Of a DNA stretch of 64,000 nt, positions 5,501 to 59,658 are shown piece after piece. The translations under genes and the position numbers were made by a program. Source of the stretch: Paragordius varius. Its lineage: Eukaryota; Animalia; Nematomorpha. Under the pieces are notes generated by a model. That model was not told the origin of the DNA and ran no database searches. It worked only from the letters and a program-made list of their open reading frames with translations. The stretch covers positions 7,130,001 through 7,194,000 of the forward strand of contig OZ176054.1 of the NCBI GenBank assembly GCA_964247055.1. The letters run 5' to 3'. Within the stretch, counting starts at the first letter, position 1. Every line of letters starts with the position of its first letter.

Positions 5501-5614
5501 ATAAAATTGCAGGAGAAAAAATAAATTACCTCTTTAATAATCGTACTAACTTCTTCAACGATAAATTGATTCTAAAATTAATATGTAATATACTTCTTCT
5601 GTCTTAACTTCCAT
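2508..5614 (-). CDS. DYNLT1: Dynein light chain, Tctex-type (112 aa, 5 exons)
   Basis: Exons 5594-5614, 5530-5571, 3704-3827, 2894-2971, 2508-2578, all GT-AG and phase-consistent, give [111 protein letters not shown], closely matching recalled Tctex-1. Missed by the ORF track because the exons are short. DYNLT1 versus DYNLT3 not formally resolved. Confidence 0.95.
5572..5593 (-). other. 22-nt GT-AG mini-intron (DYNLT1 intron 1)
   Basis: GTATATTACATATTAATTTTAG; removal joins MEVKTEE to [14 protein letters not shown] in frame. Confidence 0.9.
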
Positions 5615-5681
5615 GAGATTGCGGAGAGGAGAATTTGAAAAATTTTGTCATGCAAATCAAATCATATGGATCATGATGTGA

Positions 5682-8600
5682 ATGTATGCACAAAAGGCAT
5701 GGGAAATTCTCAAATTCAAAAGTCCACAAATTTTGAACAGCCTTACTTCACTGCCCATTATAAATAATGCAAATGATGTATTGATTAAAGTCAAAGCCTC
5801 AAGTTTGAATCCGTTAGATGTATGGATGAGAGGTTTAAATGTGTTTTGACGTAGATTCTTATGGCTCATTCTTATTTAGTAAGCTTAAAGTAATGAATCA
5901 ATTGTACACCGGTTTTGATGAGGATGCCAAACTTGTTTTAGGAAGAGATTTTAGCGGAGAAATAATAGATATGGGTACAAATGTTAAATATGTCATGGGT
6001 CAAGAAGTATAATTTAATTTTTTGCAATTTAACTTTAGTTTTCATATAATTTTTAAAATAAAATATTTACCGTAGTTTTTGTGTCTTTTATTAAAATAGT
6101 AAATCATATAGGAGAAATATTTTAAAACTGTCAAAAGGCCTATTAATAATTTGACCATTATGCAACATTCTACCATTTATTTGTCATATAATTAAAATAA
6201 AAAGTTCGATTGTCGAAATATCAGTTATTATAAAATGATCATATGCAAAGTTTTACATGCAATCTTTATATTACTCCAGTTTTATTCATGTTTTAGCTTT
6301 TTATAATGGTTTTTATTATTTATTTTGTTGTCTGATTCTTAAAGCATGTAAATATTGCTAATCCGTATCACATTTTTGCAGTTTCTTATATGGCATCCTG
6401 TCTCCTAATTATTAGTTTTATTAATAATTTTGAGTTTCCCAAAATTACAAAAAATCTCAAATATTTACTTGCAATGTTTTTTACAAACAATAATGCGGGT
6501 TTATTTTGGGTAGGGTTAAAGTATAATATTTTCTATGCTTTTGGTTCATCTTTTAAATATTTTGACATTAAAAATAAAGAAATTAGATTTTTACATTTAT
6601 TTTTACAAGTTTCAAATATAATTTTTGTTTTTGGGCTAGCTAATTAATCTTATAATGCTCTCTTTTTTTAAGGTTAAATTTGCTGATGATACAAACTTAA
6701 TATAATCCCAATTTCATGTTTTATAAGTTCCCATGTTTCTATTTAATATTTTGATTTAGCAATGTAACATAATACCTTTACATTTCAATTTTAAATATTT
6801 GAAATTCACTCTAATCAGATCTAAATTAACTTATAATTATGAAATTCAGAAATAAATCATTTCTTTTGTAAAGGACAAATGATGAAATTTAAACATTCAA
6901 GGAGGAAATAAATCTAACCTTGAAATATATAGTGCATGAGTTGAGGTGTATTTTTACTTTACACATGCCTTTATGAAAAAACTTGATTAAATAACACTGG
7001 ACAACAAATTTTTCTGCCACTCGAGTTTTTTGCATTTTCTGATATTTAGTATCATTTTAACAGTAAATCTGAAATAAAAATTATAACTCGTTGGAAGAAT
7101 TTTGTATAATTTGATTTTTTTGATTATGCGCCCTCTTTATCAAAATTTTACTAAAAAATGTTTTTCTTTGAAAATATACAAGTTAATGCCCATTTGTAAT
7201 ATATCATTCGAAAGAGTATTAAAAAAACTATAAAATGCATACTAATATGTATTACATCGACAGTTAATATTGGACCCAGAGACCGACAAACGCGCGAAGC
7301 GAGAGCATTTTTTTTTAATTATTAAATTTTTAAAACTAATGGATGAAAATAGCTCAAACTTTGTTTAGATGGTGATGAATGTCCAAAAAAGATAACACAA
7401 GAAAGTTTTTTTGATTAAAACATTTTTTATTGCTTTTATGTCACTCAAAATAGCCATTTTTAAGTTTTTTGTTTTTTAAAAATTACCATATCATCAATAT
7501 TAATTTATTTTCTTTACGAGGCTGATAATTTCGAAATTTTAAAGATAAAAACAAAGTTTAAGGTATTTTTAATCTTTTATAGCCATTATGTAATAAATTT
7601 ACAGTTATAACTATGCATTTTAGTATCCACTAGGTAAAATATTTATGATAATAATAATTTTTATTAAAAAAGCAAACCAAAAGCTTTTTCAAACATTTTT
7701 GGTAAATTAAATACTAATACAACCCTAATAATTATATTAAAATAATTTATATGATTTTCAAATTAGTTTGTCTGTGAAAAGACTTGACTTATTTAAGGAT
7801 TGAAAATTTCGACCATTTAAATCCAAATAACTTTTACATCCGATTGATTTAAATGATTTACTATCTTTTGAAAGATTCAGTTTTTTGCGCTCTTTCGAAC
7901 ATAAAATACATGGCTTCATATCTAAAACTTTAAATTTTCGAAATTTCGAGTTTAATGTTAAATCGGGGACAAAAATTATCGATACTAATATAAAAAAATT
8001 CTTCCATGCTAGACCAATTTTCTTTTCAGATATACTAATTATGTACTTTAATGAAATAAATTTTAAATTTACAAGAATGGCAGTTAAAAAAAGTTAATTG
8101 TTGTCTAGTGTAATGGTTATCAAACAGTAAAAAATGAATTTACAAAAAAACGTCAAAAGTCAAAGGCTAATATTTTTCATCCAAATCTTATTTTTGACCT
8201 TTGATTATTTTAACCTATAAAGGGAAAGAGATGTTGATTGGGTAACGCATTCAATTACATTTATTTGAATTGTCATAAAATAGATAGAGAAAATAAAAAT
8301 TCCCTATTAAAAATTTTTTTCTCATGTAAGATATCTTTAAATGCCTACATGTAAAAAGGTTTGGGGTACACTTGGAATACAACGTTGGTTAGGATCTCAA
8401 TCGAAATATACTATAGCGTCTCAGAATGCACTTTGCCTAAAACCGCGTAATTTAACGCACATTCAATCCGCTTCGCTTCCTTACATCGCTATGACAGTCA
8501 TGTCTTCTTTATTATCGACTTTGCCCAAATTTATTGTTTGTGATAGTATGGCTAATTTTTTGACTGGCCGACGGAATGGCGAATGCGATGTTAACCGAGA

Positions 8601-11280
8601 AAATCATTTTAATCATGAGTACAAAATTATTTTTATATATCACTACTACCTTCTTATCACATAGTTTTTTTGATTTTTTACTTTTCATCTCTTCTCCTGT
8701 AAGTTGAGATATACAGTGCCTCTTCTCCATAATCACTCCGATTTTGGAAAAAACATGTAACCATCATGACCCTTTTAATATAACATCATTTTGAATAATT
8801 AATAAATCATAATTCAAAAAAGATTAAACCAATTTTTTATCTTTGTCTCATTCTATGGGTTACATAATTGCCACAAACTAATAGTTGTCGGAAAAAAGGT
8901 TTAAGGCGCCTTATTTAAAAATCGAAAAAGTGCATGATGATCAGCTAAATCTAGTTTATAAGCGGTTTACTTAAAATTCCATTATGACGGGATGGGGATT
9001 ATTATAAAAGTACCGAAGTGACCCACTGTATTAAAAAATTTTCTTGTAACATTACTAAACATTTGTCATATTTTTTTAGTCCAAATGGTATATTTTTTCC
9101 GTGTAAAGCACGTGTGCAATATATACCATTTACAGTTCAAATTCACCCTTGCACAATTTAAATTCGCCCTCGAACAATTCAAATTCACCTTCACCCTAAA
9201 AAAATATGTGTTTTTGAACTAATATAACTGATTGTCATTATAAAATGCATCTTTATGGCATAGTTTATTATTTTTTCAGTATTATTTTAATTTAAAACAA
9301 ATTTTTTATTTTTCCAAAATATAGAAAAATATAGGTAATTTTTAATCTTAAAAAACATATATATTTGAGGGTGAATTTGAATTGTTCAAGGCTAAATTTC
9401 AATTGTTTAAGGGTGAATTTGATGTAAATGGTATATATATTTAATTTAAAAACAATTGTCATTATACTAATTAGACAATCACCTGAAAAATTTGATGGGA
9501 ATAATCCACGTTATAGGGATGAAGATTTAGACAACCATTTAAGCCATGTGTTTGACAATAAAGATATTTTGCTTAGGGCGGGGAGTGGTGGTATAGCAAC
9601 ATTTTTTGTTCAAGTATAAGTTTTTTCATTTTTTTATATTGATAATAATTTATAGACACTAAAATTATTAAACTTTCAAGATAAAATAATTTATAAATTA
9701 CTTATAATCCGTTTTTTTGGTTTGATGATATCTTCTATTTAAAAATGGGCAAAATATCCATATATATATAATATGTTTAGTTGGCTAAAGCCTATAAAGC
9801 TCGTCAAGTCGTTTGCATTTGTCAATCAGTAAATCATTCAAAAATGCATGAATTGGGCGCAGATTTGTGTTTGGATCATAAAAATCCATCTTTTTACATG
9901 GATCTTAAAACAATTGGCAAGTTTGTCATATCTTTCCTATATCTATACATGTTATTTTATTATAAAAACGTTTTGGAATGAGTGCTTTAAATTTGAAAGA
10001 TATTTTATACCTTTATAATATTCATACAAAGTTGCCAAATTGGGTAAACACTATTTTGAAATCTAATTAATCTATATTGTAGGGAAAAATTAATTGTTTT
10101 AGACAATATTATTAACGATAAAACTTTACAAATTAGCATTATTTTACAAATTATGCACGAACAAATAAATATTTTGATTCACACACCAAAACAATATATA
10201 ATAAATTTTATATTTTCTTATGATTAGATTCGATTTGATTTACGATGCAATTGGTGGAACGCGTGATGATATTGAAGATTTTACCCAATTATTAAAGTCA
10301 TCCAGTAAATATATAAGTCTTTCTACTCCCTTGATTACTAACTTTGATCGATACGGTTATAACCCATTGGGGCTTGTTTTAACCCTAAAGGATTTTGTTG
10401 GAAAAAATATACAGGTATTGTGGTATCTAAACCGAAAAACCCCTATATTATTTACTTTATTATCAAATGATAATTGAAACATCAATTTTCAACATTTAAA
10501 TAATTCTTTCCTTGTAATTTGAGATTCGTTTATTTACAATGGTGCTAGGTATGGTGAATAAATAAAATCCAGTTTAAAATTATATATGATTTTTTAATTT
10601 TTTTAAATTTTAATTAGTATAAAATACAGGAATATTTTAATAATTAATCGCTCCTTATTTATTTTTATTACAAATTTGCCTTTTTAAAATTTGAATCGGT
10701 TGATGTTTATGAAAAGGCTAGAAAAATTATTATTCACAAAAGGATAAGCATTAAAACTTTATATAATGGGGTCGTAATGACAAATTTTTATATTTTACCA
10801 TTATCTTGCTATATATCAATAGACGTTATCAAATAATTCCACCTTTCATTATGGATTCTATCGGCCAAGTTCACGTTTTATGCGCAAATTGACACAACTT
10901 GTTGAATCTGATAAAGTTAGTTTTCTTTTATTATATCATACTTCATTTCTTTTCACAGTAAAATAAGCCACTATGAAATAAAATTCCTTAAAAGTTATTT
11001 TTTTAAATAAACGGGGTTAATAATCGATTTATAAGGAAAAAAGATACACTTTAAAAATTTGCGGCTGTTTTATTAAGAAAATTTGACCACTTCTTACATC
11101 TTACACCAATCTTTTTAAGCTTTTATTTAAATAATAATAATAATATATATGACTATATAGATTAAACCGGTAATTGACCGCGTGTTTGAATTCAATCAAC
11201 TACCTATGGCCTATGAATACTATAAGGACAAAACTAAAGCCATATTTGGCAAAATTGTTATAACTCATGAAAATATTTAA
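5682..11280 (+). CDS. RTN4IP1: Reticulon-4-interacting protein 1-like NADPH oxidoreductase (MDR / quinone reductase family), 8 exons
   Basis: Exons 5682-5832, 5855-6006, 8359-8618, 9475-9613, 9781-9920, 10228-10414, 10823-10915, 11161-11280. Motifs VLIKVKASSLNPLDVWMR, LGRDFSG, LTHIQSASLPYIAMT, AGSGGIATF, ELGAD, IKPVIDRVFEF...GKIVI match recalled RTN4IP1. The exon 3 boundaries (AAG acceptor at 8358, donor at 8619) are the least certain. Confidence 0.88.
5833..5854 (+). other. 22-nt GT-AG mini-intron (RTN4IP1 intron 1)
   Basis: GTTTAAATGTGTTTTGACGTAG; the unspliced frame hits TGA, while splicing gives WMR-D-SYG (cf. NMRSGYG) with near-orthologous spacing to LGRD. Confidence 0.8.
6995..8110. 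mobile_element. Non-autonomous CACTA/EnSpm-like DNA element, copy 1 (about 1.1 kb)
   Basis: Ends CACTGGACAACAAATT ... TTGTTGTCTAGTG; 3-bp TAA on both flanks; nearly collinear with 51255-52374; no transposase ORF. Confidence 0.8.
8714..9028. mobile_element. Possible old Tc1-like MITE
   Basis: TA-CAGTG ... CACTG-TA ends, with only weak similarity beyond the terminal 5 bp. Confidence 0.35.
9126..9431. mobile_element. MITE family A copy (TA TSD)
   Basis: TIRs CCATTTACAGTTCAAATTCACCC ... GGGTGAATTTGATGTAAATGG flanked by TA; related copies at 13539-13784, 48562-48875, 54385-54610 and a partial copy near 37940-38075. Confidence 0.8.
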
Positions 11281-11550: not shown

Positions 11551-14500
11551 TTAATATAATTGTTGACGATTATCATCGCCATAACTTTTGTTATTACTAA
11601 TATTCATAAAATTGGTGTATTGATATAATGGTTTTTCCATTTGAGATTGAGCTTTGGTTTGTAAGTTTCCGCAATCATTTACCTTATTATTCAAGTAATT
11701 ATTTTTGTTGGAATAATTTATCATTGAAACATATTCGATCCCATTTTTGGTAGCATCAAAACCATTCGTATTAACATTACCATTTAAATGTGAATTACAA
11801 TTTTGAATGGTTGGACTTCGTAGCAATACGAGTCTGACAGTATGTTCCCATGATTTAATGAGTTCTAGAGCTTGAGCATGGGTTAAGGCATCAGTTTTAA
11901 CTCCGTTAATTTCTAGTATTTGGTCACCAACCTATTGTAAAAAATATTTGAAACAAAATCTAATCATAAGAGTTAGTTTTAGGAAAGAGACATAAATTAT
12001 TCTAAAATTTGGATCTTAAAAATGACAAACATTTGTTTGTTTTATAGAAGTTAAATTTATTTACTAAGAAATATATTATTAATAGAAAACTTTGCTAATG
12101 CAAAGTAAAGATTTAAGCATAAAAATTATTAAATATGTGCGTACATGCAGAATTTTTTTTCTCGATACATTAATTGAAAATCCTTTTGAACAATAATAAA
12201 CTTTCAACAAATTTTTATCTTCAAATCAAAACCTGTATGCGACCATCCTTGTGAGCTGGTCCAGAATCCGCAATGCCATAAACGTACAAAGGCATGTTTT
12301 GAAATTCTTTGCCTCCGCGTATGCTAAATCCAAAACCACGGGTACCTTTAAAAAGTTCGACAGAAAAAATGTGCTTATTATTTGGGCCATTTTCTTTGGG
12401 AATTGTCTGTTGTAAAGTGGTTGTCAGTCCAACTTTGCTAACGTAATGATTGGTTTGTTGCATTTGTTCTTGGTATGAGATCATAGATTGTTGGGATGTG
12501 GTGTGAGGAGGATACTTCCCGATTGACGAATAAGAGTATTCCGGAATAAATGGTGTTAATCCATTATTTGTGTTACCTACAGCGTTTAAAAATATATAAT
12601 TGTCACTTAAAGGGAAGAAGTCGTGATCAAATTTTTTAGATTTATATTATAAATTTACTGTTTTTTACATCGTATTTTTTGGATATAAAATTAAATTTTT
12701 AGACACAATATTAACTTTGCCTGATGTTAAATCTTTAAAAATGTACCTAAATTACAAGAATAACATCCCATCAAATGGTTATATTTAACAAAACATTGCA
12801 AAATGTAAGCATAAATATACAAGGTTGAATTTATTACCATTTGCGATAATATTTGGTTTATTGTAGTCATTAACATTGATACTGGGTGGAGATGTTCGTG
12901 ACAATAAACTAAGATCAGATATACTATCGGCCAAATCTGCGCCAATCTGATCGTTGCCCAGACTATATTTACTAGTGCCCGCGGTTGAAACTGTAAGGTG
13001 TAGCGTTAAACCAGATCTTTTTATAAGCTCAACAATTTGTTGATGGGTAAAGTGAGACGAGGTTTCAGACTCAGAAACAATTGTTTTATCCAAACCATGA
13101 TGATGGGTGTCTTCAGACTGTTTTATCGTAGCACTAGCACGGGGTTGAATATCGATACCATTTATAGCCATTATTTTTTGGCCTCGATGGAGGTCAGGGC
13201 ATCGTGAAGCAGGTGTGTCGGGTAATATTTTATCTAGAGATGAAAAATTTATTAAAATATTTTAATTTTGGTTGGATTGAATTTTAAAAGTAAGAGCGAT
13301 ATAAAATTTGTGCATTCTCTCTCTAAAAAGAAAATTATAAAACAATAAAAATCTCAGCTTCAAATTGTATAAAAGTAGGTAAAAAGAATTTTTAATTTTA
13401 CATTATATTAGGCCATTATTTTCCTAAACCCAATACATGTGTACAACACTGGGGCCCAAATAGATGCCTCCGAAAATAATATTTTATCAAATTAACGAAG
13501 AAATTTCATAATTTTCAATAGCGAAAAATTTTATAATACCATTTACAATTCAAATTCAATTTAAAAATAAATTGTGTTTTCGGGCCAATATATATTAATA
13601 TGAAATAGATCTTTATGTCTTAGTTTTTTATTTTTTCAGTATTATTATATTATTAGAATTTTTAAATAATATAAAAAAATATAGGTAATATTTAATCTCA
13701 AAAAACCATAATTTATTTTAGGGTGAATTTATGTTGTCAAAGGGTAATTTGAATTGTTCAAGGGTTAGTTTGAAGTGTAAATGGTATATATTAATATTAT
13801 TCATTTTTGATGCATTCATTCCTGAGATATCGCTTAAAACGCAATAATAATTAAAAAAGAGAAAAATGCGACAAACCACATATTTCATTTTTCCTATCAA
13901 ATAATTTTACATGGTGAATAAAAATATAGTATTTTAATCAATAATTTTTCAAAAAAACAGATAAAACATGTAGTTACTAATGAAAGAGCCTGATTTTCCA
14001 TCCATCGATGATAGAATGATGAATCCAAATCCTTCATTTAGATTAGGTCGGTGTAAGGTACAAGTTTTGATATTATTATTATTATTATTATTTGGTAAAC
14101 TTGAATTCAATATTGAAATATTATTTCTATCGCCATCATTAACATTTTTGCTAAGGGGTGATGGTGAATTTATCATAGTTTGAGCATCTGGACTATTGGT
14201 AGTACCATAATCTATATAGATTTGAAATTTTTGTTTGTTATTGTTTTTCAAAGCGGATTTTTTCAGCAAATGGTTTTATTATTTATCGAAAATGAGCTTT
14301 AAAAATACAAAAAACTTGAAATAAACGATACTTAAGCAAAGTAGATGAAATTCATATGATTGGATATGACTTTTGACCGGTAAAAAATAAATCAGTCTCA
14401 CCAGTTAATAACTATTTATTAGCAATAATAGTTAACAAAAAAATGACAAAATAAATTTAACTGGTTCTTTGAAATTGACAAACCTTATCCTTGTCATAAC

Positions 14501-17500
14501 CCTAAATAATAAATAAAACAAAAAATCACATGGAAATCCTGGAGGTGTTTTTCCATTATAACGAGTTAAACAATCATTCAATTTCTCCTTAATATGGTCA
14601 TATCGACTTTCTGATCTAGATTGTTGTTGCTGTTGTTGATTATTTATATTTGCCGCCATTTTTTCCGCTTGATGTGGAGGTGGAGTGTGAGCATTAAGGG
14701 AATTTTTAAACCCATTTTTATGATAGGATTGCGATATTTTTGGTGGTGTTATTTTAACCTCATTCGCATTATTAGCCATAAAATAATACGGGGAGGAATA
14801 TTTATTATCCTTATTTTGAGCTTGTTCAAACGCAGAATCCCGCAGCAAATTATCCAATGAATCACCCATTCTCGGTTGTATTTTGGAGTTAAAGGGTTGA
14901 TTGTTTTGCCTTTGAAGTGTTTTTGTTTTATCGAATTCCGCCAACATCTTCATATCATGGTCCACATCATCTTTCAAAAATTTAAATTTGTGTGGCAAAG
15001 TGTGATTACTATAATCGGTACATAAAGTACTATCCTTCCGATGTTTAACTGCTTTAGGGGTTTTAATATGGTTATTGTTGATGTTGTCATGACCATTCAA
15101 ATGTTTGAATATGTTTGTTGGTTTTGCTTTTTCAGACGGGTATGCGTGAACAATACCTCGACAAATGATAATTTGTATAACATTAAAGACTGGAATGGAA
15201 TTAAATAGGTTGAGAATGTCAGAATATGAGTAGCCCAAAACATTAACACCATTGACATAAACCAATATATCACCTGTGATTAAAATTATATGTTTAATTA
15301 TATGTAAAAAGAATTAAACTTACAAAATTTATCAAACCTTTGAGCAAATTTCCATCTCGAAAAGCAGGAGAATCTGGAACAATTTTATTGACAAACAAAA
15401 ATTCTTTGTCACGTTCACCGTGTCCTAGAATGGTAAAACCAAACCCGCGCTCACTTTTAGCTAAATGAAACCCAAGTAAACGGCCTCCATACTTTTCACT
15501 GAGTTGTAATGGATCTTTCGTGAATATAATTACATCATTATTCCCACAATGATTCAACTGTTTTGTACTTTGTGAAAAGCAGCCGTTTGATATTTTCGAT
15601 AAATCTATATACATACGGTATACAAACTATTTTTTCAAAAATTAATTTTAATTAATGGGCTTATGACTGGGCTTCTCAATATTAATATTTATAAGGCCGA
15701 ATTTTTCGTAAAACCAGAATAAAAAGGTTATAACCAACCTGATATTTTAGATTATATTATAGAACCGAATATTAAGTGTGGTTTTTAATTTATCATATGA
15801 AAGGGAACATCTTAAACTAGCCAAAAACATGCAAATTATTTTTTACTATTACTATTATAAATTAAACTAACTAAAAATACCAATAAAAGTATGATTATAA
15901 TAATAATATCGGGATTATACTTGTGAAAGATCGATTCTTGTAATTTTTGTCGCGGTCAATCAAGCTAATAGGGTGATCGATATAATCTAACCTAGTATTT
16001 AGAAATTAAAAATTTTAACGAAAATATACAGCTGGAATTTTTTGAATTCTTATAAATTCCTTGTTAGTGCAAAGTTAAAAACTAATTTAAATCGTTTTCA
16101 AAATAATGCAATTGGATCGATTCATGTGCAAATATAAAGTATTTTGTAGATTCATCAAGTTTTTAAATTTGAAAATATTTACAATGAGAGATTTGAATAT
16201 TACAATGTTTAAAATGTTTATCTCTATGACCATCCTTATTTTAAAATTAATTTTAAAAATATGCAAACTTTCCATTCTGTAAAGCAGACGATTTTTCAAC
16301 AAAATTGTTAGTATTTTGTGGTTGTTTGAAAGTATCGTTTGGCGATATATTCAAAGTTGCGTCCCACCGTTTTATTTTACTTTGGTCATTAGTGATGTTG
16401 GAATTATAATGAATGTAATTGGATTTATAAATGCTAGATTGTATAGTGCTTAACATATCTGTTGTCCCAGATATAATGGATGATGTCGGGGAAAATACTG
16501 TTTTTGCCGAAGATTGTAAATTGGTATTTTCTCTAATATTGATTTTAGAATTATTTATTAAGGTGCTAACAGGTTCGTGCCCTATGATTATGGGAGAATA
16601 CTTGATATGATCGCATGACAATTGATTTCCTTTAAGTTGTGTAGTCTCACTTTTATTGTTTACTGAATAATTTGATTCGTTGGACACAGTTCGATTCAAT
16701 TTATTTGAAATGTGAGTGTGCTTTTTAGTATCAAAATCCTGGATCGTGTTAAAAGTTTGATCTCGTATATCATGAGTTATTGGTTCTGGATTATTAACGT
16801 GCAAGGGTGATTGAAAAGAATCTATTGATTTGCCTACCGGATCGGAAGGGATTGATTCAATCGAATGAGCTGATAAGGAATTTAGTGAATTCAGCGTTTC
16901 ACAGGATACGATAGATGTTTGATCCTTCCCATTTAATGGATAAGGAGGTATTTTATTACTTTGGTTTTTATTACGGCTGTTGTATTCAATATCAATGGTA
17001 CACGTTAAACTTTTTTGTAGATTTGAGTGCTTTTCGCAGAGTGATTCGGGTGTAGTACTGCTATTATCTTCCGATGTTTTAGCTATATTGTCCGTTTTTT
17101 GATCAGTGGTAGGGTAATTAATTGGACATGATTTGATAGAAGTTTCATATAAACTCGTAGGTGATTTGGGAGATGAACTAGTATTGCTACTTAAATTAGT
17201 GGAATTTTCTTTCAAATCGTTTGGAATTATTGGCCGAGGCGTTCCATATAAATTACCTAAAGTAAATATTATTGTGATATCAAGCCGATAAATTATAAAA
17301 ATAATATAAAACGTTTTGTGAACATATAACTTCACATAATCATTTCCTGATTATAATCATTAACCTGTTTTGATTGGTACTCAATAAACTACCTATCTAC
17401 CTACCGCATTACTTCAAGTATATATAACATTTTATCGTACAACACTTTTGTGTTGTAATATTTTATGTGCTTAGCAATATGGATTGTAAATCTTTACAAA

Positions 17501-26500: not shown

Positions 26501-26772
26501 ATGATTTAAAAAATTTGTGTTACCTCATTAAAGCTATATATATATATATATATTTCAGTATCGTTTTAAATTAATTATAAATAATTATACGAGTCAAAGT
26601 TCTGATATAATTTGTTTTATACTTTTTAGACTAAATAATTATTGTTGTTTTGCACAACAGGTTGCAAGCAAAAACATCTTGATTTAAAATTGAATTATAA
26701 TTAAATTGACATTTATTTAAATAAGGTAAAAACGTTTAAACTAATGGAAATTATACAATGTTAAAAATTAAA

Positions 26773-26807
<35 letters not shown>

Positions 26808-28099: not shown

Positions 28100-28149
<50 letters not shown>

Positions 28150-31100: not shown

Positions 31101-31190
31101 CAATAAAAAAATTATAAAAGTTCAAGTGTTGGAGATAGAATAAAATAGAGATAATAAATGGGCAACAAACTTTAAATAAAAATATATTTG

Positions 31191-31231
<41 letters not shown>

Positions 31232-36064: not shown

Positions 36065-42039
<5,975 letters not shown>

Positions 42040-46263: not shown

Positions 46264-46336
46264 CCTCCATTTGACTCATATAATGTGTAAGTTTCCGGCA
46301 TCACCACTCGGAGGTGGAGGTAAGATTTTGATGTCC
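46264..46336 (-). ncRNA. Candidate HDV-like self-cleaving ribozyme at the RTE 5' end (probably slightly decayed)
   Basis: Minus strand: GGACATC (P1) aaaatctta CCTCC (P2) ACC (P3) TCCGAGT (L3) GGT (P3) GATGCC (P1, one base short) GG (P1.1) aa ACTTA cacattata TGAGT (P4) CAAAT (J4/2, catalytic C) GGAGG (P2). Folded by eye. Confidence 0.62.
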
Positions 46337-47031: not shown

Positions 47032-50000
47032 ATGCTGAAAAGGCATGTCAGGTTTTTTGGAAAAAGATTTAGCTCATTATCATTACCGAATTCTGGTAAA
47101 TTTTGTTTATCATATTAAGATTTTGGTAATTTAACCGACAAAAAGCTGACAGGTTTAAATTTTTAATTAAGTAGATGAAACTATTGAGTGGAATGAGACG
47201 GAGGATATAATTTCCGTAAAAAAGAGGTTTAAAAATAATAGTCCGTTTTGGTATTTGTCTCAAGTTAGAAAATTGGTAGATGCCAAAAACGTATTTGTTA
47301 AAATTTGATTTTAGGTTCCAGGAGCTCTTCATCTTTTTGAGCATACGATGGTAGAAGAAGATGGCCTACCACCCATAAATTTAATAAAATATGAATTGAC
47401 TCAAATTTTACAAATGTTAATAAACGGATGTGCACATGCCGGTTACATTCAAAAAGCTTTTAATCTTTTTGAAATGGTAAATCATTTTTCTATCTCTCTT
47501 TAATATAATATATTGGATAATAATACATGAAAATATTTTAATTATTATACTTACATATCAATAATTATTTATATTATTTTATTTTAATAAGTCTATTTTT
47601 GAAACAATAAATTTAACTGCGATGTTAACACTAATCTACGCTTTTTTATTTTTTTGTATCACAAAGTTAGAAATAAACAGTATAAAAAGATGTAAGTTTA
47701 TAAATTTCTATTAATGTGCCTTAAATATCTAAAAAATGCATTCAAAATTAGTTCCATTCTATTTTTGGTTAAATGTCCTTGGATTTCGGTGTCATTTTTT
47801 ATTGGCTCAATTTTCATAAAATAATCCATGAATTTTTAAAGAAAACTTTGTGTGTTGTTTTCTCTAAAATATAATGAATGTACTTGTATATAATAAAAAG
47901 GAAACATAATCAAAATATTAGACTAATATTAAAAACGTAACAAAAATATATACATATTTTTAACTGCAATGGTTTTAAAAACGGATTGGAAAATCCTTTT
48001 AAAACGCATATGCTAATGTTTACGGCTTCAATTCCTTTATAATTAATTTTTTTCCGTTTCGTTTTTTGTTCACAGAATGCATTTTCGATTGCTTATTTTA
48101 CATTATAATTGTGCTATTCGCAACAAATTAGTGTATAAACTAAAACAAAATATTGAATAAAATATTCTACGAGAACAAATATTTTTATTTACATAATATA
48201 TTTGCCTAGATGAAAAAATACAAGCTTGATATCGATGATTCAATTTATACAAGTCTTTTAACAGCATGCTCGGAATTTAATAAAGAAAACCAATCTTTGG
48301 CTCTGGAAAAACTTAAAGAGCTTCGACATTATATGCAAGAAAAGGTTTTTCAAATTCTTTAAATTTTAAGTTTAAATATTTTTGGTAACTTTGCCCAAAA
48401 CATAGCAAAAGGCACACTACACTATCATTTTATCATATAAACATAGTAGTTGTTTGAAATCCATTCATAAGTAAAAATATTAAACACCCTATTGTTTTTT
48501 AATTGTTAAATAGATATTTATCTATCTAAACTATAAGTAAGATATTTGAAATCGATATATACCATTTACATTTCAAATTCATTCCTGGACAACAAAATTC
48601 ACCCTCGAACAATTTTTCTCCTTTGAACATTCAAAATTCACCCTCAAACAATTCAACCCTTGTCACAGTGAACTTTCGGGCTAATATAATTCATTAATAT
48701 AAAATATATATTTATGGCCTAGTTTGTAAATAATTTTTCAGTATTATTTTAATTTTAAACAAAATTTCATTTTTTAAAAAATATAGGTAATTAAACTTAA
48801 AAAACACCAAATATATTTTAATGTGAAATTTGAATTGGTTAAGAATGTTGAACAAGGGTGAATAAGTGTAAATGGTAAAAATTATAAGCTTAAACATTTA
48901 TTTTTAGTTCTAACTTCGCCCAAAACAGTTAATTTATAATCAATAGACACACTACTTGTATTTTTTTTCCTATTAATGAGGTAGTTTGAAATCCAATTAT
49001 AAGAAAAAATATTTACACCTTATTATTTTTTAGTTGTTAAAGGGATATTTATTTATCTTTATTATAAGAAAGATATTAATTTGATATATAAGAAAAAATG
49101 ATTTGATACCATATTATTTTTTATATGATAGCTAAATAATTTAAAACTTTTGATTTAAACCTTTAAACCGGTTAAAATCTAATAATATAAAATATATATT
49201 GCTGCTGATACCAAACAAAATAAACGTTGGCGATTCAATTCAATTGTAAAAATTCACAAATTATTTACTGATTTTTAGTTTCATATCATTTTTTAAATTA
49301 ATTTTCACCTGATATAGTTTTGAACTTGTTTTTTTTCTGAGCCATTAAACGTAACATATTTTGAACGATTATATAGAAAATATAATGTATCGATTAAAAT
49401 ATGGTCTTTTTAGGCTTTTTTATTATTCATATTTTCATTGTACTAATTTTTATATTTTTCGTTTGCATAATGTATTTATTATGTTTTATAGAATATACCA
49501 TATAACCGTTATCATTACAATGCCCTGATAAAATGTTATGCACGATTGGGTGGTCAACACAATATTGCTCATGCCTTGACTCTTATGGACGAAATGAAAA
49601 ATGTTACGAAAAATAACAAATCTACAATGATTTCCAACATAAACAACAGTAAAATTGAAATTTTATGCAAACAATACTTAAAAACTAATGGAGACAAATT
49701 CTTTTCAAAAAAAGACAACCATACTTTGATAACCCTTATTTTCTAATGTAACCTGCCTGAGTTGCAAAATAATAAATTATTTACATTTGGTAAAAGACTT
49801 AATTATACATAAATGCTATATAGAATAATTCAGGGTTTGAAACTATCTATCAATATTTATCCTTGACTTATGTTTTATCTCCCAACTTTATTTAGCCGTG
49901 AAAAATTCAAAAGCATTGGAAGAAAATAATGTCAATAATAAAAAATATGTTCCTGAAATATCATGCAAAATTGGGAAAGATACATTTGCACAATTACTTA

Positions 50001-53000
50001 GTGCTGGAGTGACTGAGAAATCCTATGGTTTTACACTTGCTTTAAAGGTTGGATAACTCATTTATTCATCCTTGATGTGTTTTGTATAATATATAAAATA
50101 ATTGCATTTTAACATTTTTTGCAAAACACCCATTTTAGTTTAACAAATTCGGGTTTATATGGTATTAAAAATGTTTCTATAGTCTTTGTCATTTACATAT
50201 GTGCTATTATGCTAGAAAATGCATGTTTACGATATATCTATATATTACAAATTTTTAAAGTTAAAATGCCAATTTTATTTTCAGATTTGGGCTCTCATGA
50301 AACAGTGTGACATAAAGCCCACTATTATACATTACAATACATTATTAAGGAGTTGTCGGGATAGTAATTTAATCATCCCCAATGATGAAAAGACCGATAA
50401 TACACAGCAATTAAATTGTACTAATAATAATATTAACGATTCAATAAAATTTGTTCGGAATCAAAATCAAACGAATCCTCTTAGTAATAATTGCCCTGAT
50501 AATCAACCCGCAGAATTAGCCCTAAAAAATAATTCATATCATAATACATTTTATGAGATTGATAAACATTTACGATACCTCTACCACCAAGATATAAATC
50601 GATTAGAAAATTTGGTTAATAAAATTCCCCCTAAATCTCTAAGGACGATATGTCCGACAAATAATGAACAAACTAAAATACCGATTGATATGATGACTAA
50701 TTTGGAAGAAAATATTGATAAAAATAACGAAGACGCGTTAGTCAAAAATGAACCTGTTGATATAAAAAATTTGACTTTAACTTCGTTAGAACAACCATCT
50801 TTGATGAATGGTTCAGCAAAGTCATTAGATTTACTCGAAAACACTGATATGAACATTGGTATGAGTGGATTAATATATCTATAATATTTTTGTTATATAT
50901 TAAAATATGGATTAAGTCTGACCCGTCAAAAATGCATCTTTGTGAAGTGACCGGTTTTTAAAAAATAACTCATCAAAGAATGGTTATATTTTATATAAAT
51001 GATAAAATGGGCTGAAATTTATAATATTCTCTAATAATTTTTATAATTTTTTCCATATATTCACCATTCTTATATAATTTGTTTGATTTGTTAATTTTAT
51101 TTTAGTAAATTTAATTACAACATATAGAATTGGGGATTAATTCACTATTTATGATAATAAATGCATCGTAAGTGCACACACCAACGCATAACATTAAGTC
51201 TAGTAATAAGCATGGGATTTTTTAGTAAATGTTGTTAACGTGAAAAATAGCTTACACTAGACAACAAATTTTTCTGCCATTCGAGTTTTTTGCATTTTTT
51301 GATAGTTAGTATCATTATAACAGTAAATCTGAAATAAAAATTATAACTCGTTGGAAGAATTTTGTATAAATTGATTTTTTTGATTATGCGCCCTCTTTAT
51401 CAAAATTTTACTAAAAAATATTTTTCTTTGAAAATATACAAGTAATGCCCATTTGTAATATATCATTCGAAAGAGTATTAAAAACTCAATAAAATGACTA
51501 ATATGTATTACATCGACAGTTAATATTGAACACAAAGAGCGACAAACGCGCGAAGCGAGAGCATTTTTTCAATTATTATATTTTTGAAACTAATATATGA
51601 AAATAGCTCAAACTTTGTTTAGATGGAGATGAATGTCCAAAAAAGATAACACAAAAAAGTTTTTTTTGATTAAAACATTTTTTATTGCATTTATGTCACT
51701 CAAAACAGCCATTTTTAAGTTTTTTGTTTTTTAAAAATTACCATCTCATCAATATTAATTTATTTTCTTTACAAGGCTGATAATTTCGAAAATTTAAAGA
51801 TAAAAACAAAGTTTAATGTATTTTTAATCTTTTATAGCCATTATGTAATAAATTTACAGTTATAACTATGCATTTTAGTATCCACTAGGTAAAATATTTA
51901 TGATAATAATAATTTTATTAAAAAAGCAAACCAAAAGCTTTTCCAAACATTTTTTTTTAAATTAAATACTAATATAACCCTAATAATTATATTATAATAA
52001 TTTATATGATTTTCAAATTAGTTTGTCTATGAAAATTCTTGACTTATTTAAGGATTGAAAATTTTGACCATTTAATTCCAAATAACTTTCACATCCGATT
52101 GATTTAAATGACTTACTATCATTTAAAAGATGCAGTTTTTTGCGCTCTTTCGAATGATATAAAATACATGGCTTCATATCTAAAACTTTAAATTTTCGAA
52201 ATTTCGAGTTTAATGTTAAATCGGGGCCAAAAATTATCGATAAACTCTAATATAAAAAAATTCTTCCATGTAAGACCAATTTTCTTTTCGGATATACTAA
52301 TTATGTACTTTAATGAAATAAATTTTAAATTTACAAGAATGGCAGTTAAAAAAGTTAAAATTTGTTGTCTACTGTTATAGATCAGAAACTCCCAAAAAAT
52401 AATATAAAATTAGATGGTAACATCATCTATTTTCATATCTATTTTACATGATTTCATTTTCTTTCCAACATACCATTAAAATATAAAGGATACCCATTTA
52501 TGATCCTAATATAATACGTAATAGCCATATTATTTCAAAAATATTAAAACGCTTGTAGGTAAATATTTTGTTTTTTCTTGTTTAAATATTTTTTATTAGC
52601 ATATATAAAGTCCTATATAACCAGGCCTTTTTACTGTTTATTTTCATATGTATATATAATATATTTTTAGAAGAAATAATTCAAACTAATTACAGTCCAA
52701 CATTTCATGAGTGGTATGGTGCAATACAAAACTCACAACACATTTCAGCCATAGATACCAACGTGCTAAAATCTAAGATTGATATCCTAAAATGGGCTAA
52801 ACTTAGCCTTCTAGGTGGACTTTCAGGCCTAATTGAACAAATTCAGAAAGATAAGGTGTGAATGCATTTATTTGCATATTTTTTAGTTAAAACAGTCATA
52901 AATAATTTAATTTTTTACACTTATTTATCATACAGTAAATTTAAAAAAATAACTTTTGCATTACCCTCCTAATTTTAATCTTGTTGATATAGTATTAAGG

Positions 53001-56000
53001 TATTTTTTCACTTCAAAAATTGATAATGTTTATTTTTTTGGTCAATTTGTTATATTTTATTTATAGACTTCCTTAATCTGTAATATATATAACCTTTTAA
53101 TTTTATGCTGTGATATCATTTTGCTAACAATATTAAAATACTTGTTTAAATAATAAATATTTTATCGATTTGATTTTATATATTATTTAAAAACGATGAT
53201 GAGTTTTTGTCTTTTTATGTTTCTGCACTTTTAAAATCTTTTCTAGTCATTTACTAATGAATGAAGAAAAAAATATTTTATTTTTCCAGATTACGCCAGA
53301 TACAAAACAATTAACATTATTGGCCGAAATTGTGCCATTACATCCAATGTACATTACAGCACTGTTAAATGGTTTACAATTCGAGGAAAATATAGAAACC
53401 ACACCAACTGTACAGATTGTCAAAGCTAGTCCCTCAATTAAATCCAAAAAATCAAAAGAAAAAATGGTAACAAATAGACCACTGGAAAATTTATCGGGAC
53501 TCGAATCAAGAAAGTATGCATAAAGTTTATTATGACAAAATAAATAAATGATTTGATGACAAAATTTCAATAATCCAAGTTTTGTTTATTCACTTATAAT
53601 TTAAATTATCTTAAAACAAAAAATCCGGAATTTTCAATTCATGATAGTATCTTTTTAGATGGATAAAAAAATCAAAAAGATAGATTAATTTAATGAAAAA
53701 CCTATTAATAAATTAAAAAATAATGTTTTTACATGAAACCCAAATTTTCAAATAATTGTTGTGCGACCCTTTTATATAAAGACAACAAGTTTAATGTGTT
53801 ATAGTGGTTTAGATATTGTATTTATAGACTATTTTTTGGGCATGAAATGGTAGGCGCCCTATTTAACTGTTTTATTTGAGCCCCGCCCGATAAGGCGTTT
53901 CACTTTTTGTCCTACTTTACATTTTTGGGTAATTTTATATCCCACAGCTCAATATTTGGTTATTTTAGTTAAATATTGTTCTCATGTATTAGATAAAAAA
54001 ACTTATAATTTTTAAAGTTTTGTGACTTCTAGAGAATAAAATTGGGACAGCTCCAAAATACGATTGTAACGAACAGCTGATATAAAATTAAAATATATAA
54101 AATTTATACTGGTAAAATGTATCCTGAAAGCTTTGTAGTAAAGTTAATTAATTAAGTTACCTAATTAGATTATACAATTTGTTGTATTAGCAATTAAATA
54201 AATTTATAGGAAGGCGAAGTTAGATGACGATTTTTTTTATAATTTGACATTTTTTAAAAAAATATTAGGATAATGATCCTAAAAGACTTAAGAAATAAAA
54301 TTTCAAATGCTTTTGGCATATAAAACTATCCCAAAAGGTAATGGAGTGTTAATAAAGTTTTGATAGATACAGTAAACAATTATACCATTTACAGTTTAAA
54401 TTCACCCTAAAATAAATTATGTTTTTTAAGATTAAAAATTACTTATACTTTTTTATATTTTAAAAAAGAAAATTACGTTTAAAATTAATATAATGCTGAA
54501 AAATAATAATCCATGCCATAAGAATATATTTCTTATTAATGACGAGTTATATTAGCCCGAAAAGACTTAATTTTTTAGGGTGAATTTAAGTTTTTCAAGG
54601 TGAATTTATATATATATATTATTTCCCTCGACCTATGAAAGGGTTTAATTCAGTTTTATTAATTTGCAAATTTTTCAATAGAGATTTGAAATTTCTGGGA
54701 CCGCGTTACCGCGATAGTTTGGTTGCACAACAAAACACAAGATCCAGGCAAACATTGGATTCAGACTTTTATTTAGTTCTATTAAAAAGGTATGCTGCCC
54801 ATAACTAATAAAATGTTAATGTTTCGGTTATTGAAAATTTAATTTAGATTATATATTTGTTTTTAATGTGTTATCTTATATAAATTTTGTTCTAAATTTG
54901 TCATATGATACTTACGGTTTATCACTAAAATTAAAGAAAACAAGATTATTAAATATCAACTTGTGTACAACCAGCAATGTCTGTTAAATAACAATTGGAA
55001 TTCAATGATTATATTAATTCGTGTAGTCTCATCATAAGAGCTCATTATACAGTGCATGGGAAATTAGAAAACGGGTTTTAGCTAAAAAACCAAATCTGGA
55101 AAACACATGATATCCCGATTACATAGACTCATAAATCGCATAATTTACCATATTTAATAAAAACCTCAGTTTTTTGTAATTATAAGTTATCAATCATATC
55201 GCGAAAATCAACAAAATATTGAAAAACACATGATATCCGTTTACACTGACTTATAAATCGCAAATAAATAAAAACATGGTTATTTTGTAAACTCTATTTC
55301 ATGCATATTTTATTAATAATTACATTTGTTTAGATATGCAACATTTTACAGTTCAAATTATAAGGGACTGATCCCAACACAACGCGTAGAAATTGAAAAA
55401 TGTCTTCAAAATACAATTGATTTAATGACTCGTTGTGGTCATTCTTTAACTGTTGCTCATTTTGGCGCACTAGCAATCGCTTGTAAAAATGTAACAAAGG
55501 CTAAATCATTGATTCAAGATATGGAGGTTCAAAAATACTTATAAATTTATTTTTATACCAATTCAAATTAATCGTATAACCAAAATTAATAGTTCGGTTT
55601 TCAAATATATTTTGATTTTTTAAATAATTAAAAGCTATTTATATAAACTATTTGCTGTTAAAAATCTTATATATTACACCATGTATCCAACTTTTTAAGA
55701 CATTAAACATACATCCAAATGCAATTATTGTGACTACACTTGCTTCTAATGCGGATAGTGGACGAGATATCCCCTACATGAAATGGTGTATGTCCCTATG
55801 CCTTAAATATGATATCGATAATAAAGATGCTTATTTGAATCGCATTTTTGACCAATTTGTTAAACATGTCGATTCCGCCTTGGTTATAAAGGTATATTTA
55901 ATGGATTTTTATTACAATTTTTTTTTCGACTTAACAATTTTACTGCAAAAAAGAAATTATACGGACAAACCATAAAAACTTTATAAAACAACCATAATTT

Positions 56001-56482
56001 TAAAACCTTGATTTTTTATATGACTTATTATGAGTTCCAAAATAAGTTATAGAGATATAAATTAGTAGCACCTAAATTATAATCATATCGTTTATGTAAA
56101 AAAATCAAGGTAAAATATATATCTTTTAGTTTTTATTTTGTCTGTATAATTTCAATTTTACTGTAATTTTTAATTCTATATGCAGCAACATAATCAAAGA
56201 TTCCCGGAGTCTATTGGAAATACATTTAAAAGCACGCGACACTACCATCCTATAGCACTTAGTTATTATTACAGAAATTTTGTTGATAAAAAAGATTACA
56301 ACAAAACTAGGTATGGTGAAAGTTTACCTGACCAAGATTTGACAAATACTGGTGGACATAAGAATAACAATAAGACAACATACAAAATGAATTATGTGGA
56401 TTATAATGAGAAATGTTACATGGATTTCCGAGAAATGTATCAAAAGAAATGGCAAAAAGTTTTATCTTCAAATGGCGATTGA
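47032..56482 (+). CDS. PTCD1: Pentatricopeptide repeat protein PTCD1-like (mitochondrial), 14 exons
   Basis: Exons 47032-47095, 47120-47152, 47175-47290, 47315-47476, 48210-48344, 49492-49648, 49896-50047, 50285-50858, 52671-52855, 53290-53513, 54682-54789, 55334-55526, 55700-55891, 56186-56482. Basic presequence MLKRHVRFFGKRFSS; motifs NSPFWYL, LINGCAHAGYIQKAFNLF, YNTLLRSCRD, LSLLGGL.GL, FGALAIAC match recalled PTCD1. Confidence 0.87.
47096..47314 (+). other. Three consecutive mini-introns (47096-47119, 24 nt; 47153-47174, 22 nt; 47291-47314, 24 nt)
   Basis: All GT-AG; each leads to an in-frame stop if retained; splicing yields a continuous ORF from the presequence into the first PPR. Confidence 0.85.
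48562..48875. mobile_element. MITE family A copy
   Basis: TA-CCATTTACATTTCAAATTC ... GTGTAAATGG-TA. Confidence 0.75.
51255..52374. mobile_element. Non-autonomous CACTA/EnSpm-like DNA element, copy 2
   Basis: CACTAGACAACAAATTTT ... AAATTTGTTGTCTACTG with TTA on both flanks; highly similar to 6995-8110. Confidence 0.8.
54385..54610. mobile_element. MITE family A copy (right end truncated)
   Basis: TA-CCATTTACAGTTTAAATTCACCC ... GGGTGAATTT. Confidence 0.65.
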
Positions 56483-56925: not shown

Positions 56926-57503
56926 AAGTTAGTTGCTACGCGACTAACAACCACATATACCCAAAAATATTATTAGTTAATAATTGAATAAAATAATTTT
57001 CTATAGATTTATATATTGATAAATTATCAAGAGTCAACTATTGATTGAATATATTTAAATAAATTTCAGCCACAATTACCGATAGGCATCCATTTTTTGT
57101 TACTTTATATAATTTACTAAATTTAAAAAATTTAACTTTGACGGTTCTAAAACGCGGTTTTGTTTCAGTTTTTACCCTATCTATATCAATTTTATATGAT
57201 ATATAAAAGTGTATTATTTTTACAATAAATTTTGCTGTTATTATAGTTGTTTTGTTCATATATCTCAATTAGGCTACATGGATATTAAAAAAATTAAATT
57301 CAAAAAAATTCTTCCAAAGATCAATAAAACCTAACCATTTTTTCACAAACCATTTCCAAAATTTATCATATCTTTCACTATATATATATATATATATAAT
57401 CAATTTATTTTAGCTTCCCATCAATGTATTTGAGTATGTGAATCAAAATAAAATCTAAGCCCAACAACTCTTTATCCCCTCCAAAAAAGGTAAATAAAAT
57501 TTG

Positions 57504-59658
57504 TTAGTTTTTATGCCCGTTCGTAATGCCTTGTTCCGTTTCAGAGAAAATTCCAAAAATTTGATTGAGTTTACGTATAGTGTCTTGTGGATCAGTCACT
57601 GTGTGAGAAATGGTTCTTTCATGCTCAAATATTTCATAATCGTTTCCTCCCTTGTGTAAAGTAAAAAATTAAAATTACTGTCAAACTTTTGTGCACTAAA
57701 TTAACTTTTGTGTCTATTTTTTGGACTAATTTGTTTTAAATTATGCACATAATATAAGTGATTAACTACATTTTATATAATTGGTAGAATAAAGAAAATT
57801 AAATTATAGTTATTTGTATATATTATATATCATTATTTTCAATCAAATAATTTTGGACTTTAGATAAAACCAAATTATGTTTTAAATTTTGTAGTACAAA
57901 AAATATTTTTCTTGCATTTTACCAATTAATATATTCCAAGAATATTTGCAAATAATTTTGTCAGGCCTTATCTTTTTTGCAAATAAGAGACGGATTAAAC
58001 TGTATAAAATTAGGCTTTAAAATAACTATAATATCCAAATAACATTATTAATTTATTTTAACAGAACCGTATATATATCTTTTAAGATATTATTTTTTAA
58101 ACCATTTTTTTATTTGAACAAAATATTTTATATAAAATTTAAGAAGCCCTGACATAAAGTATATATAATCTATCTTTTTACGTTAAAAAAACTATCTTTA
58201 TCAGAAATAAATTTAAGAGCATACATACTCATTTAAAAATCTGAGTTTTGTTAAAAAATTTGTTGTTTCAAAACATGCATATTTTTAAAAGAATAGAAAT
58301 CAAGTAACCTCCATAGTTTTATCACCAAAAAAGTAGATATTTTCATATTCTGGAAAATGTTGAAGGCAAAATGATTTATCCCAACCTTTGGGGAAACAAT
58401 CAATACTAGTTTGGCCACCTAATTATATTTTCATGCAAAAAAAAATAAAAACATTTTTTTCTAATTTTTAAAAATATATTATTAATTTGATTTTTGCATA
58501 GTTTTACCTATGGAGAAAGTTAATCCGAGATCAGGAAAGGTTTTTCTTAAATCTTTGACCATACTCTCCCTTATTTTGTGTTTCTGATTGTTAAATAAAA
58601 AATTTGTTTCAATAAAATATGTACAAAAAGAATCTTTTTAACCTTGATAATGAATAATAAGTGCCAAAAAAAATTGTATAATGACGGCTTGATAAGGTAA
58701 AAACAAAAAATGAAAAAAATATTTTATTTATATGCATCCAAATGAATACAAGGCTGTGAGCATAATTTATATTGAAATATTATTTGTATCAGGTGATATG
58801 GTGTCGAGAGTTTGGCAAAATAAATATTTTTGTATAGCTATTAAGACAAAAATTTCCCTTATTTGATATTTACATATTTATAAATTATTATTCAAATTTA
58901 ATTTTAGTATATTTTTTTGAAAAAACCTTATCGTATTCTGAAAAAGCATCTCTTTCCTCTTGTGTGGAATTTCTACCGGCCGGCGCTATATTTATAAGAC
59001 CTTTACGGTACTCAATAAATGTTCCCCTACAAAAAATATTCAATTTAATGTAAACAATCATATGACGTTTATATATTTGTATAAATTTGCGTAGTTTTTT
59101 TTTATTTATTTAAGAATGAACAAATATGACGTAATAATGTCAGTAAGATATAAATTAAAATTAGTATACCTTTTAAATGGTAGCCATAGATTTGACAAAT
59201 ATTTTAAAACATAATTTATAAATTTTTGGAGATTATCATCGCCAATTAATTGTTGAAGGCTCTGTAAATTATAAAAATAAAATTACTCACATAAGATTTA
59301 ACATGTTTGCCTTGCTTGTACATAACAACTCCGTTTTCTGGAAGTATGTAATCAAAAAACTCAACTAAATAAATAAAAAATTAATAAATTATAAAAAACA
59401 ATTGTATAAAGCAATCAATAATGTCAGTAAAAACTTAATTCTTTTCCAATTTGTTCGTTAATTTTTGGAAGGTCCGAGCCACTTACAATTCCGATTTCGC
59501 GTTGGGCCTTCAACTTTTTTAAAACCTCTTTCATATCATCTTGAATTAACTAAAATATATGAAGATTAAAATACTTGACGCGGAATAGTTAAGGTACCAT
59601 CCAAATCAAAGAGTATTAGATCTTTTGGTAATTTGGTATTATCGCCGTTTTGATGCAT
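57504..59658 (-). CDS. PMM2: Eukaryotic phosphomannomutase (HAD family), 8 exons
   Basis: Exons 59575-59658, 59435-59549, 59291-59364, 59170-59261, 58927-59026, 58508-58583, 58309-58418, 57504-57650. Motifs [57 protein letters not shown] are intact. PMM1 versus PMM2 cannot be resolved. Confidence 0.95.
59262..59574 (-). other. PMM mini-introns: intron 1 (59550-59574, 25 nt) and intron 3 (59262-59290, 29 nt)
   Basis: GTATTTTAATCTTCATATATTTTAG and GTGAGTAATTTTATTTTTATAATTTACAG; both are required to keep the conserved frame. Confidence 0.9.

Follow-up and report, generated by a model that had tools for sequence, protein, structure and literature searches.

In the blood fluke Schistosoma mansoni, small introns are known to cluster towards the 5' end of many genes, within approximately the first four exons, where they defeat standard RNA-seq gene modellers and spoil gene models, whose accuracy recovers when those exons are left out of account (Protasio 2012, PMC3254664). 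The 2009 genome of the same species (Berriman 2009) is credited with an "unusual intron size distribution" in the words quoted from it in PMC4723143. Animal introns shorter than 30 nucleotides (nt) have been published for two groups only, the myxobolid myxozoans and Dicyema japonicum (2026 survey of 51 genomes, PMC13644364); in both, the ultra-short class forms the majority of introns (median 22-27 nt) in compact genomes, no 5' restriction is described, and the survey predicts that further lineages with ultra-short introns exist (PMC13644364). Here we describe a window of 64,000 nt from the genome of the hairworm Paragordius varius (Nematomorpha; assembly GCA_964247055.1, contig OZ176054.1, positions 7,130,001 to 7,194,000 of the forward strand), in which introns of 22-29 nt, hereafter called mini-introns, are confined to the starts of genes whose remaining introns measure from 64 nt to 14 kilobases (kb).

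By analogy, the small 5' introns of S. mansoni are the closest published parallel to the locus described here, and for this reason the polarity, taken by itself, is not without precedent in animals. The fluke resembles the present genome in having small introns among the first few and larger ones downstream, and in being a repeat-rich parasitic worm, but it is a flatworm, belonging to another phylum, and no mechanism has been established there either. Its small introns are reportedly ~30-40 nt long, compared with 22-25 nt here. With the myxobolids and D. japonicum the hairworm shares GT-AG introns of 20-30 nt, conserved animal positions, weak splice-site motifs and a parasitic way of life, and introns shorter than 30 nt at conserved positions, by which those groups were recognised, are found in the window as well (22-29 nt, the conserved position being that in DDX47); here, however, the mini-introns are only 8 of 48, lie strictly at the 5' end and stand beside kb-sized, transposon-filled introns. 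A myxozoan source of the DNA is unlikely on the sequence itself, given that mini-introns are in the minority and that the introns are rich in repeats. The hairworm would therefore be analogous to both, combining a fluke-like 5' polarity with introns of dicyemid or myxozoan size in a third lineage.

Two further comparisons concern intron length in general. Longer first introns are presented as a general eukaryotic property by Bradnam and Korf (2008, PMC2518113); in both cases length depends on rank, but the direction is opposite, since the first introns are the shortest here. For human genes, the definition given in PMC4463651 places ultra-short introns below 66 nt, with a threshold of 65 nt. 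That threshold is near the 64 nt at which the ordinary intron class of the window begins. Human ultra-short introns are rare and measure at least ~43 nt, and we know of no 5' restriction among them. No mention of introns in hairworm genomes was found in a literature search whose reach did not include the main hairworm genome paper, and the word 'intron' is absent from the Gordionus genome preprint and from a Mermithidae/Nematomorpha preprint.

Results and discussion

Two size classes of introns, the smaller confined to gene starts

Six recognisable animal genes lie amid repeats in the window: DYNLT1, RTN4IP1, a MAGI-like gene, DDX47, a PTCD1-like PPR gene and PMM. Coding segments were found from six-frame open reading frame (ORF) lists combined with a codon-usage score, and introns were called by enumerating all GT-AG pairs that join consecutive coding segments in frame; distances were counted from the ATG, genomic or spliced. 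In the six rebuilt genes this yielded 48 GT-AG introns, their median length being ~280 nt, of which eight measure 22-29 nt, none measures 30-63 nt and 40 measure 64-14,125 nt. The bottom of the ordinary class is marked by the 64-nt intron of the MAGI-like gene. An earlier reading of this DNA, made from the letters alone (hereafter the sequence-only reading), had counted about 51 introns, a total that our recount lowers to 48; the eight mini-introns were recovered at the places and with the lengths that it had proposed, and the other 40 introns span the range of 64 nt to ~14 kb that it had given.

The observation that the mini-introns are confined to gene starts was confirmed. All eight rank first, second or third among the introns of their gene, and the distance from the ATG to their start is 21-368 nt on the genome or 21-273 nt in the spliced sequence, the farthest thus falling within the ~370 genomic nt claimed before, and intron 1 is a mini-intron in five of the six genes (DYNLT1, RTN4IP1, DDX47, PTCD1-like and PMM), also as claimed. 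Among the introns that start at most 370 nt from the ATG, 8 of 12 are mini-introns, compared with 0 of the 36 located farther downstream (hypergeometric probability 1.3e-6). When mini status was permuted within genes, the observed rank sum was reached in 0 of 200,000 trials, and a Mann-Whitney test on the coding-sequence position of the mini-introns gave p=2e-5; the polarity therefore exceeds chance in these six genes. When both strands were scanned for GT-AG segments of 18-45 nt flanked by coding-like frames, no gene body proved to require another mini-intron. The short introns of the ordinary class (64, 70, 89, 108, 113 and 143 nt) are distributed across ranks 2-7, therefore the mini class alone is position-bound. 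In this window, the division of introns into two discrete size classes is real, and only the smaller class is bound to position.

Coding evidence for the mini-introns

All eight mini-introns begin with GT and end with AG, each shifts the frame or holds in-frame stops, and the flanking exon frames are open. Enumeration of in-frame joins left, for each of them, one GT-AG solution or a clear best one (Table 1). For four of the eight, namely those of DDX47 and RTN4IP1 and the 25-nt and 29-nt introns of PMM, coding continuity across the join is gap-free when compared with solved human proteins or Pfam. In DDX47, query residue 42 of exon 1 corresponds to residue 78 of the human protein (3BER) and residue 2 of exon 2 to residue 82, residues 79-81 being accounted for by K43, the G of the split codon and H1, so that the join has neither gap nor surplus. 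In PMM, residue 28 of exon 1 and residue 2 of exon 2 correspond to residues 20 and 22 of human PMM2 (9HN3) and are contiguous, whereas the 29-nt intron 3 adjoins position 57 of the Pfam PMM profile plus two residues in exon 3 and position 60 in exon 4. Exons 2-8 of this gene cover positions 1-219 of the profile in succession, with 1-5 unaligned positions at the junctions, and exon 1 lies N-terminal of it. In RTN4IP1, for which a single GT-AG solution was found, exon 1 extends to residue 70 of 2VN8 (E=6.8e-5) and exon 2 resumes near residue 71-72, with a one-residue offset in a weak match (E 0.83). The first residue of the predicted RTN4IP1 protein corresponds to residue 22 in the human 2VN8 chain, and the protein has no obvious mitochondrial presequence.

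The DYNLT1 mini-intron is the sole GT-AG join of the ATG exon (MEVKTEE) to exon 2. Since exon 2 lacks an ATG and is preceded, one codon upstream, by a stop, it has to have an upstream partner exon, and a single ATG exon, 22 nt away, is available for this. No homology match spans exon 1; the C-terminal residues of exon 2 fall approximately where the Tctex-1 profile begins, as extrapolated from residue 3 of exon 3, which is profile position 11. In the PTCD1-like gene, whose identity was checked by its PPR repeats only and whose downstream exon borders are approximate, the peptide of exon 1 (MLKRHVRFFGKRFSSLSLPNS) is basic, with zero acidic residues, and may represent a mitochondrial presequence; neither homology nor RNA backing was found for intron 1. 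Intron 2 of this gene is the least secure of the eight mini-introns, its evidence being reading-frame logic, and intron 3 joins a 45-codon open frame (exon 3 itself having ~39 codons) to the first PPR-bearing exon. The 33-nt exon at 47120-47152 (+) lies between the 24-nt and the 22-nt intron, so that two introns and an exon are packed into 79 nt; the footprint of a single spliceosome is usually assumed to be larger than this.

The donors of the mini-introns are GTATAT, GTTTAA (three times), GTAAAT, GTATTT (twice) and GTGAGT. Three of the eight, in unrelated genes (5833, 36195 and 47153, all on the + strand), share the donor AG/GTTTAAAT, which is found in 0 of the 40 longer introns; counted over both strands of the window, this 8-mer is present 24 times, with ~15 expected. 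It may be a preferred signal of the mini class. Minor (U12-type) introns, defined by a /[AG]TATCCTT donor and a TCCTTAAC branch site, were rejected, given the GT-AG ends and given that none of the mini donors contains TATCCT. An Rfam scan of the window gave no matches, therefore there are no small nuclear RNA (snRNA) genes in it.

Table 1. Genes, mini-introns and related features of the window (positions counted from the first nucleotide of the window)
Feature	Position	Strand	Description	Identity or note
DYNLT1 gene	2508..5614	-	5 exons; introns 22, 1702, 732, 315 nt	Tctex-1 profile
RTN4IP1 gene	5682..11280	+	8 exons; introns 22, 2352, ~985, 167, 307, 408, 245 nt	human structure 2VN8
MAGI-like gene	11551..32920	-	8 GT-AG introns: 14125, 1015, 701, 64, 318, 744, 261, 301 nt	PDZ and guanylate-kinase domains
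DDX47 gene	36065..42039	+	11 exons; introns 23, 108, 351, 1151, 456, 235, 113, 1592, 340, 265 nt	3BER; DEAD and Helicase_C domains
PTCD1-like PPR gene	47033..56482	+	13 exons; introns 24, 22, 24, 733, 1147, ~247, ~237, ~1806, ~434, ~1820, 173, ~294 nt	PPR repeats
PMM gene	57504..59658	-	8 exons; introns 25, 70, 29, 143, 343, 89, 658 nt	Pfam PMM profile, PMM2 chains
DYNLT1 intron 1	5572..5593	-	22 nt, GT-AG, phase 0	21 nt after ATG (5614)
RTN4IP1 intron 1	5833..5854	+	22 nt, phase 1, donor AG/GTTTAAAT	151 nt after ATG (5682)
DDX47 intron 1	36195..36217	+	23 nt, phase 1, donor AG/GTTTAAAT	130 nt after ATG (36065)
PTCD1-like intron 1	47096..47119	+	24 nt, in-frame stop; single GT-AG solution	63 nt after ATG (47033)
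PTCD1-like intron 2	47153..47174	+	22 nt (19-nt alternative), donor AG/GTTTAAAT	after 33-nt exon
PTCD1-like intron 3	47291..47314	+	24 nt (18-nt alternative), two in-frame stops	258 nt after ATG
PMM intron 1	59550..59574	-	25 nt, phase 0; single GT-AG solution	84 nt after ATG (59658)
PMM intron 3	59262..59290	-	29 nt, phase 0; single GT-AG solution	368 nt genomic / 273 nt spliced after ATG
Shortest ordinary intron	15274..15337	-	64 nt, MAGI-like intron 4	1,741 nt into the coding sequence, within PDZ domain
MAGI-like exon 1/exon 2 junction	32583..32607	-	candidate 25-nt GT..AA segment	excluded from the mini-intron count

Conservation of intron positions

The sequence-only reading took the mini-introns for shrunken ancestral introns, and at least one of them fits this part of its interpretation. 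Homology searches showed that genomic ORFs of many other animals have the same boundaries, to the codon, as DDX47 exon 2, and the contig of one other animal carries an intron of >340 nt at the position of the DDX47 mini-intron, in the same phase; there are also animals with no intron at this position. Judging from these homologues, the DDX47 mini-intron occupies an old, widely shared animal intron position, and it is the only mini-intron for which this was shown. Both PMM mini-introns match human introns 1 and 3 if the human PMM2 exon borders lie at c.66/67 and c.255/256, as we take them to do. No close relative was present among the homologues of DDX47 exon 2, and searches for homologues of the 222-amino-acid exon of the PTCD1-like gene and of RTN4IP1 exon 1 gave no matches.

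RNA, second haplotype and repeats

The locus is contained in five DNA runs (X1-X5), and three RNA runs labelled as the same species (X6-X8) had 0 sampled 31-mers in common with it. RNA contigs from X6-X8 match only DYNLT1 exons 4 (2938-2972) and 5 (2508-2579) with ~86-89% identity and cross the junctions of introns 3 and 4 at 2972/2973 and 2579/2580, their overhangs translating to the upstream exon ends (ten residues in one case and KLGKPFKYI in the other). Splicing of the ordinary DYNLT1 introns 3 and 4 is thus confirmed for a related strain or species, the RNA coverage being confined to exons 3-5 of this gene. A different strain or a cryptic species is the probable source of the RNA runs, and this would account for the poor RNA support for the genome.

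A second haplotype, with a divergence of ~1.8%, was detected in DNA run X1 over positions 5244-5921, a region that includes the mini-introns of DYNLT1 and RTN4IP1. Both stay 22 nt long, with one substitution each, and the exons differ by 2 substitutions over 281 nt (one A-to-V, one synonymous), whereas the long intron carries 7 substitutions and an indel in 286 nt. The constancy in length of the mini-introns as opposed to the long intron is suggestive only (Fisher p=0.09).

Long introns were said in the sequence-only reading to be filled with transposable elements, and this could be shown for only some of them: sequence repeated within the window makes up 33-64% of four long introns (RTN4IP1 introns 2-3 and PTCD1-like introns 5 and 8). 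A repeat of ~1.1 kb is present both at 6994-8114, in RTN4IP1 intron 2, and at 51254-52378, in PTCD1-like intron 8. In DNA run X1 this repeat reaches a word depth of 1e5-1e6, compared with a baseline of ~300, and it is therefore an extremely abundant element.

Other features of the window

The window is AT-rich (GC 23-34%) and repeat-rich, a composition that fits the published Gordionus genome, for which a preprint reports 26.9% GC, 64% repeats and a BUSCO score of 71.6%. No tRNA hits were obtained for it. The ATGs of DYNLT1 and RTN4IP1, which are arranged head to head (5614 and 5682), are 68 nt apart, so that the two genes should have very short or overlapping 5' untranslated regions and a tiny bidirectional promoter. 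Between DDX47 and the PTCD1-like gene, at 42050-46300 on the minus strand, lies a decayed retrotransposon of the long interspersed nuclear element type with frameshifted ORFs, in which a weak RVT_1 fragment (43035-43256, E=0.0014) falls short of Pfam's cut-off.

The sequence-only reading had suggested that the MAGI-like gene could also begin with a mini-intron, but no GT-AG solution exists for it. The junction between exons 1 and 2 requires a frame change and looks coding on both sides, and an exhaustive search for GT-AG pairs of up to 90 nt that join the two frames found none. The best-looking protein is given by removal of the 25-nt GT..AA segment listed in Table 1. Behind this junction may lie an intron of non-canonical type or an error in sequencing, or else the frameshift may be real.

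Explanations for the confinement of mini-introns to the 5' end

We place moderate confidence in an account in which GT-AG spliceosomal introns of this genome form two classes, mini-introns of ~22-29 nt and introns of at least 64 nt that are often enlarged by transposons, the former being old introns reduced to a floor length and restricted to the first few hundred nucleotides past the transcript start (ranks 1-3 here). The 5' zone would be permissive, not compulsory: introns below the usual limit of ~60 nt would be removable near the cap or the promoter only, the candidate causes being aid by the cap-binding complex to U1 and the tri-snRNP (small nuclear ribonucleoprotein), or the polymerase in early elongation. 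Deletion drift would then take introns to ~22-25 nt in the 5' zone only, and downstream introns shorter than ~64 nt would be purged by selection. The version based on the cap-binding complex and U1 is the most concrete form of this idea, and position-dependent splicing of this kind, which the sequence-only reading had put forward, would fit the pattern. The interpretation given in that reading is partly supported as a whole, through the polarity, the two size classes and the old position of the DDX47 mini-intron. From the pattern we infer that the mini-introns are actually spliced, that the confinement extends genome-wide and that a cap- or promoter-proximal mechanism underlies it. More tentatively, position may set the length regimes themselves, introns of 22-29 nt being spliceable only cap- or promoter-proximally, those of 30-63 nt forbidden everywhere and at least 64 nt needed downstream, perhaps independently in hairworms and blood flukes. 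If true, minimal intron length would vary with transcript position and would not be a fixed steric constant.

Several observations weigh against the permissive-zone account. The DYNLT1 mini-intron and the three of the PTCD1-like gene, four of the eight, are backed by reading-frame logic only, and a Pfam scan of the 50-amino-acid join between PTCD1-like exons 3 and 4 did not recognise a PPR repeat across it. No RNA contig lies over any mini-intron (X6-X8 searched at 85% likeness, the relative being 86-89% identical). "Cap-proximal" is gauged here from the ATG, not from mapped transcription starts. In addition, the 1,702-nt intron 2 of DYNLT1 starts 85 nt after the ATG, inside the 5' zone, the 2,352-nt intron 2 of RTN4IP1, half of it made up of a very high-copy repeat, begins 325 nt past the ATG, and in PMM the order is 25, 70 and 29 nt, with the 70-nt intron between the two mini-introns. 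Length is therefore not set by position alone; with introns of 1.7 and 2.35 kb so close to the ATG, the 5' zone permits tiny introns and is not simply compact.

The same two long introns bear on the view that no special splicing is involved, according to which a deletion bias shrinks introns, transposons re-expand them, and insertions or length are disfavoured near the promoter, so that the floor is reached only at the 5' end. This compaction would cover the long downstream introns, in line with the repeats found in four of them, one of extreme depth in X1, and with a genome as AT- and repeat-rich as that of Gordionus. However, the kb-sized introns at +85 in DYNLT1 and at +325 in RTN4IP1, the latter bearing a repeat, indicate that the zone is unprotected from length and insertions, and they also weaken the selection for very compact 5' regions that the sequence-only reading had offered as an alternative. 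Besides, six short introns of 64-143 nt are free of within-window repeats, four of them beyond the 370-nt zone, and none of these has fallen below 64 nt; the empty gap at 30-63 nt points to two thresholds, not to a continuum. For these reasons we consider compaction by itself rather unlikely. It seems less likely still that the mini-introns were gained recently, with a 5' bias in gain, instead of being old introns that shrank: the identical donor AG/GTTTAAAT in three of the eight could hint at a common origin, but the position and phase of the DDX47 mini-intron are common to unrelated animals, and the PMM mini-introns presumably sit at the positions of human PMM2 introns 1 and 3, which we also count against recent gain.

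The remaining explanations concern the observation itself and appear to us very improbable. With six genes only, mini-introns could be spread along genes throughout the genome and the window could happen to show the 5' ones, all the more so since frame-preserving, stop-free mini-introns inside long open exons would escape frame-based detection. The permutation and hypergeometric tests speak against such chance or ascertainment, and so do the both-strand frame-break scan, which yields no further required mini-intron, and the PMM exons, which tile the Pfam profile nearly gap-free. The slightest probability of all attaches to the idea that the segments are not introns but assembly indels, signs of decayed genes or sites of translational recoding. 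In its favour are the lack of RNA evidence and the MAGI-like junction, which has no canonical solution. In all eight cases, however, the segments have GT-AG ends, a tight range of 22-29 nt and open flanking frames; four joins are residue-exact with respect to human proteins or Pfam, the sequence is reproduced in an independent DNA run and the second haplotype preserves the lengths. Recoding was rejected on account of the donors and the GT-AG ends of all eight segments.

Conclusions

Gene finders and spliced aligners in which the minimum intron length is set to ~20-40 nt will produce broken 5' ends for many genes in a genome of this kind, and Protasio et al. report likewise for the fluke. Broken 5' ends could inflate the 'gene loss' attributed to hairworms and contribute to low BUSCO scores such as that of Gordionus, the link with BUSCO being speculative. 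If the pattern is genome-wide and confirmed by RNA, the hairworms would be the third animal lineage with introns shorter than 30 nt, and the first in which such introns are restricted by position and stand beside kb-sized, transposon-filled ones. This makes it possible to test what sets the minimal length of an intron and whether the context of the cap or the promoter alters it.

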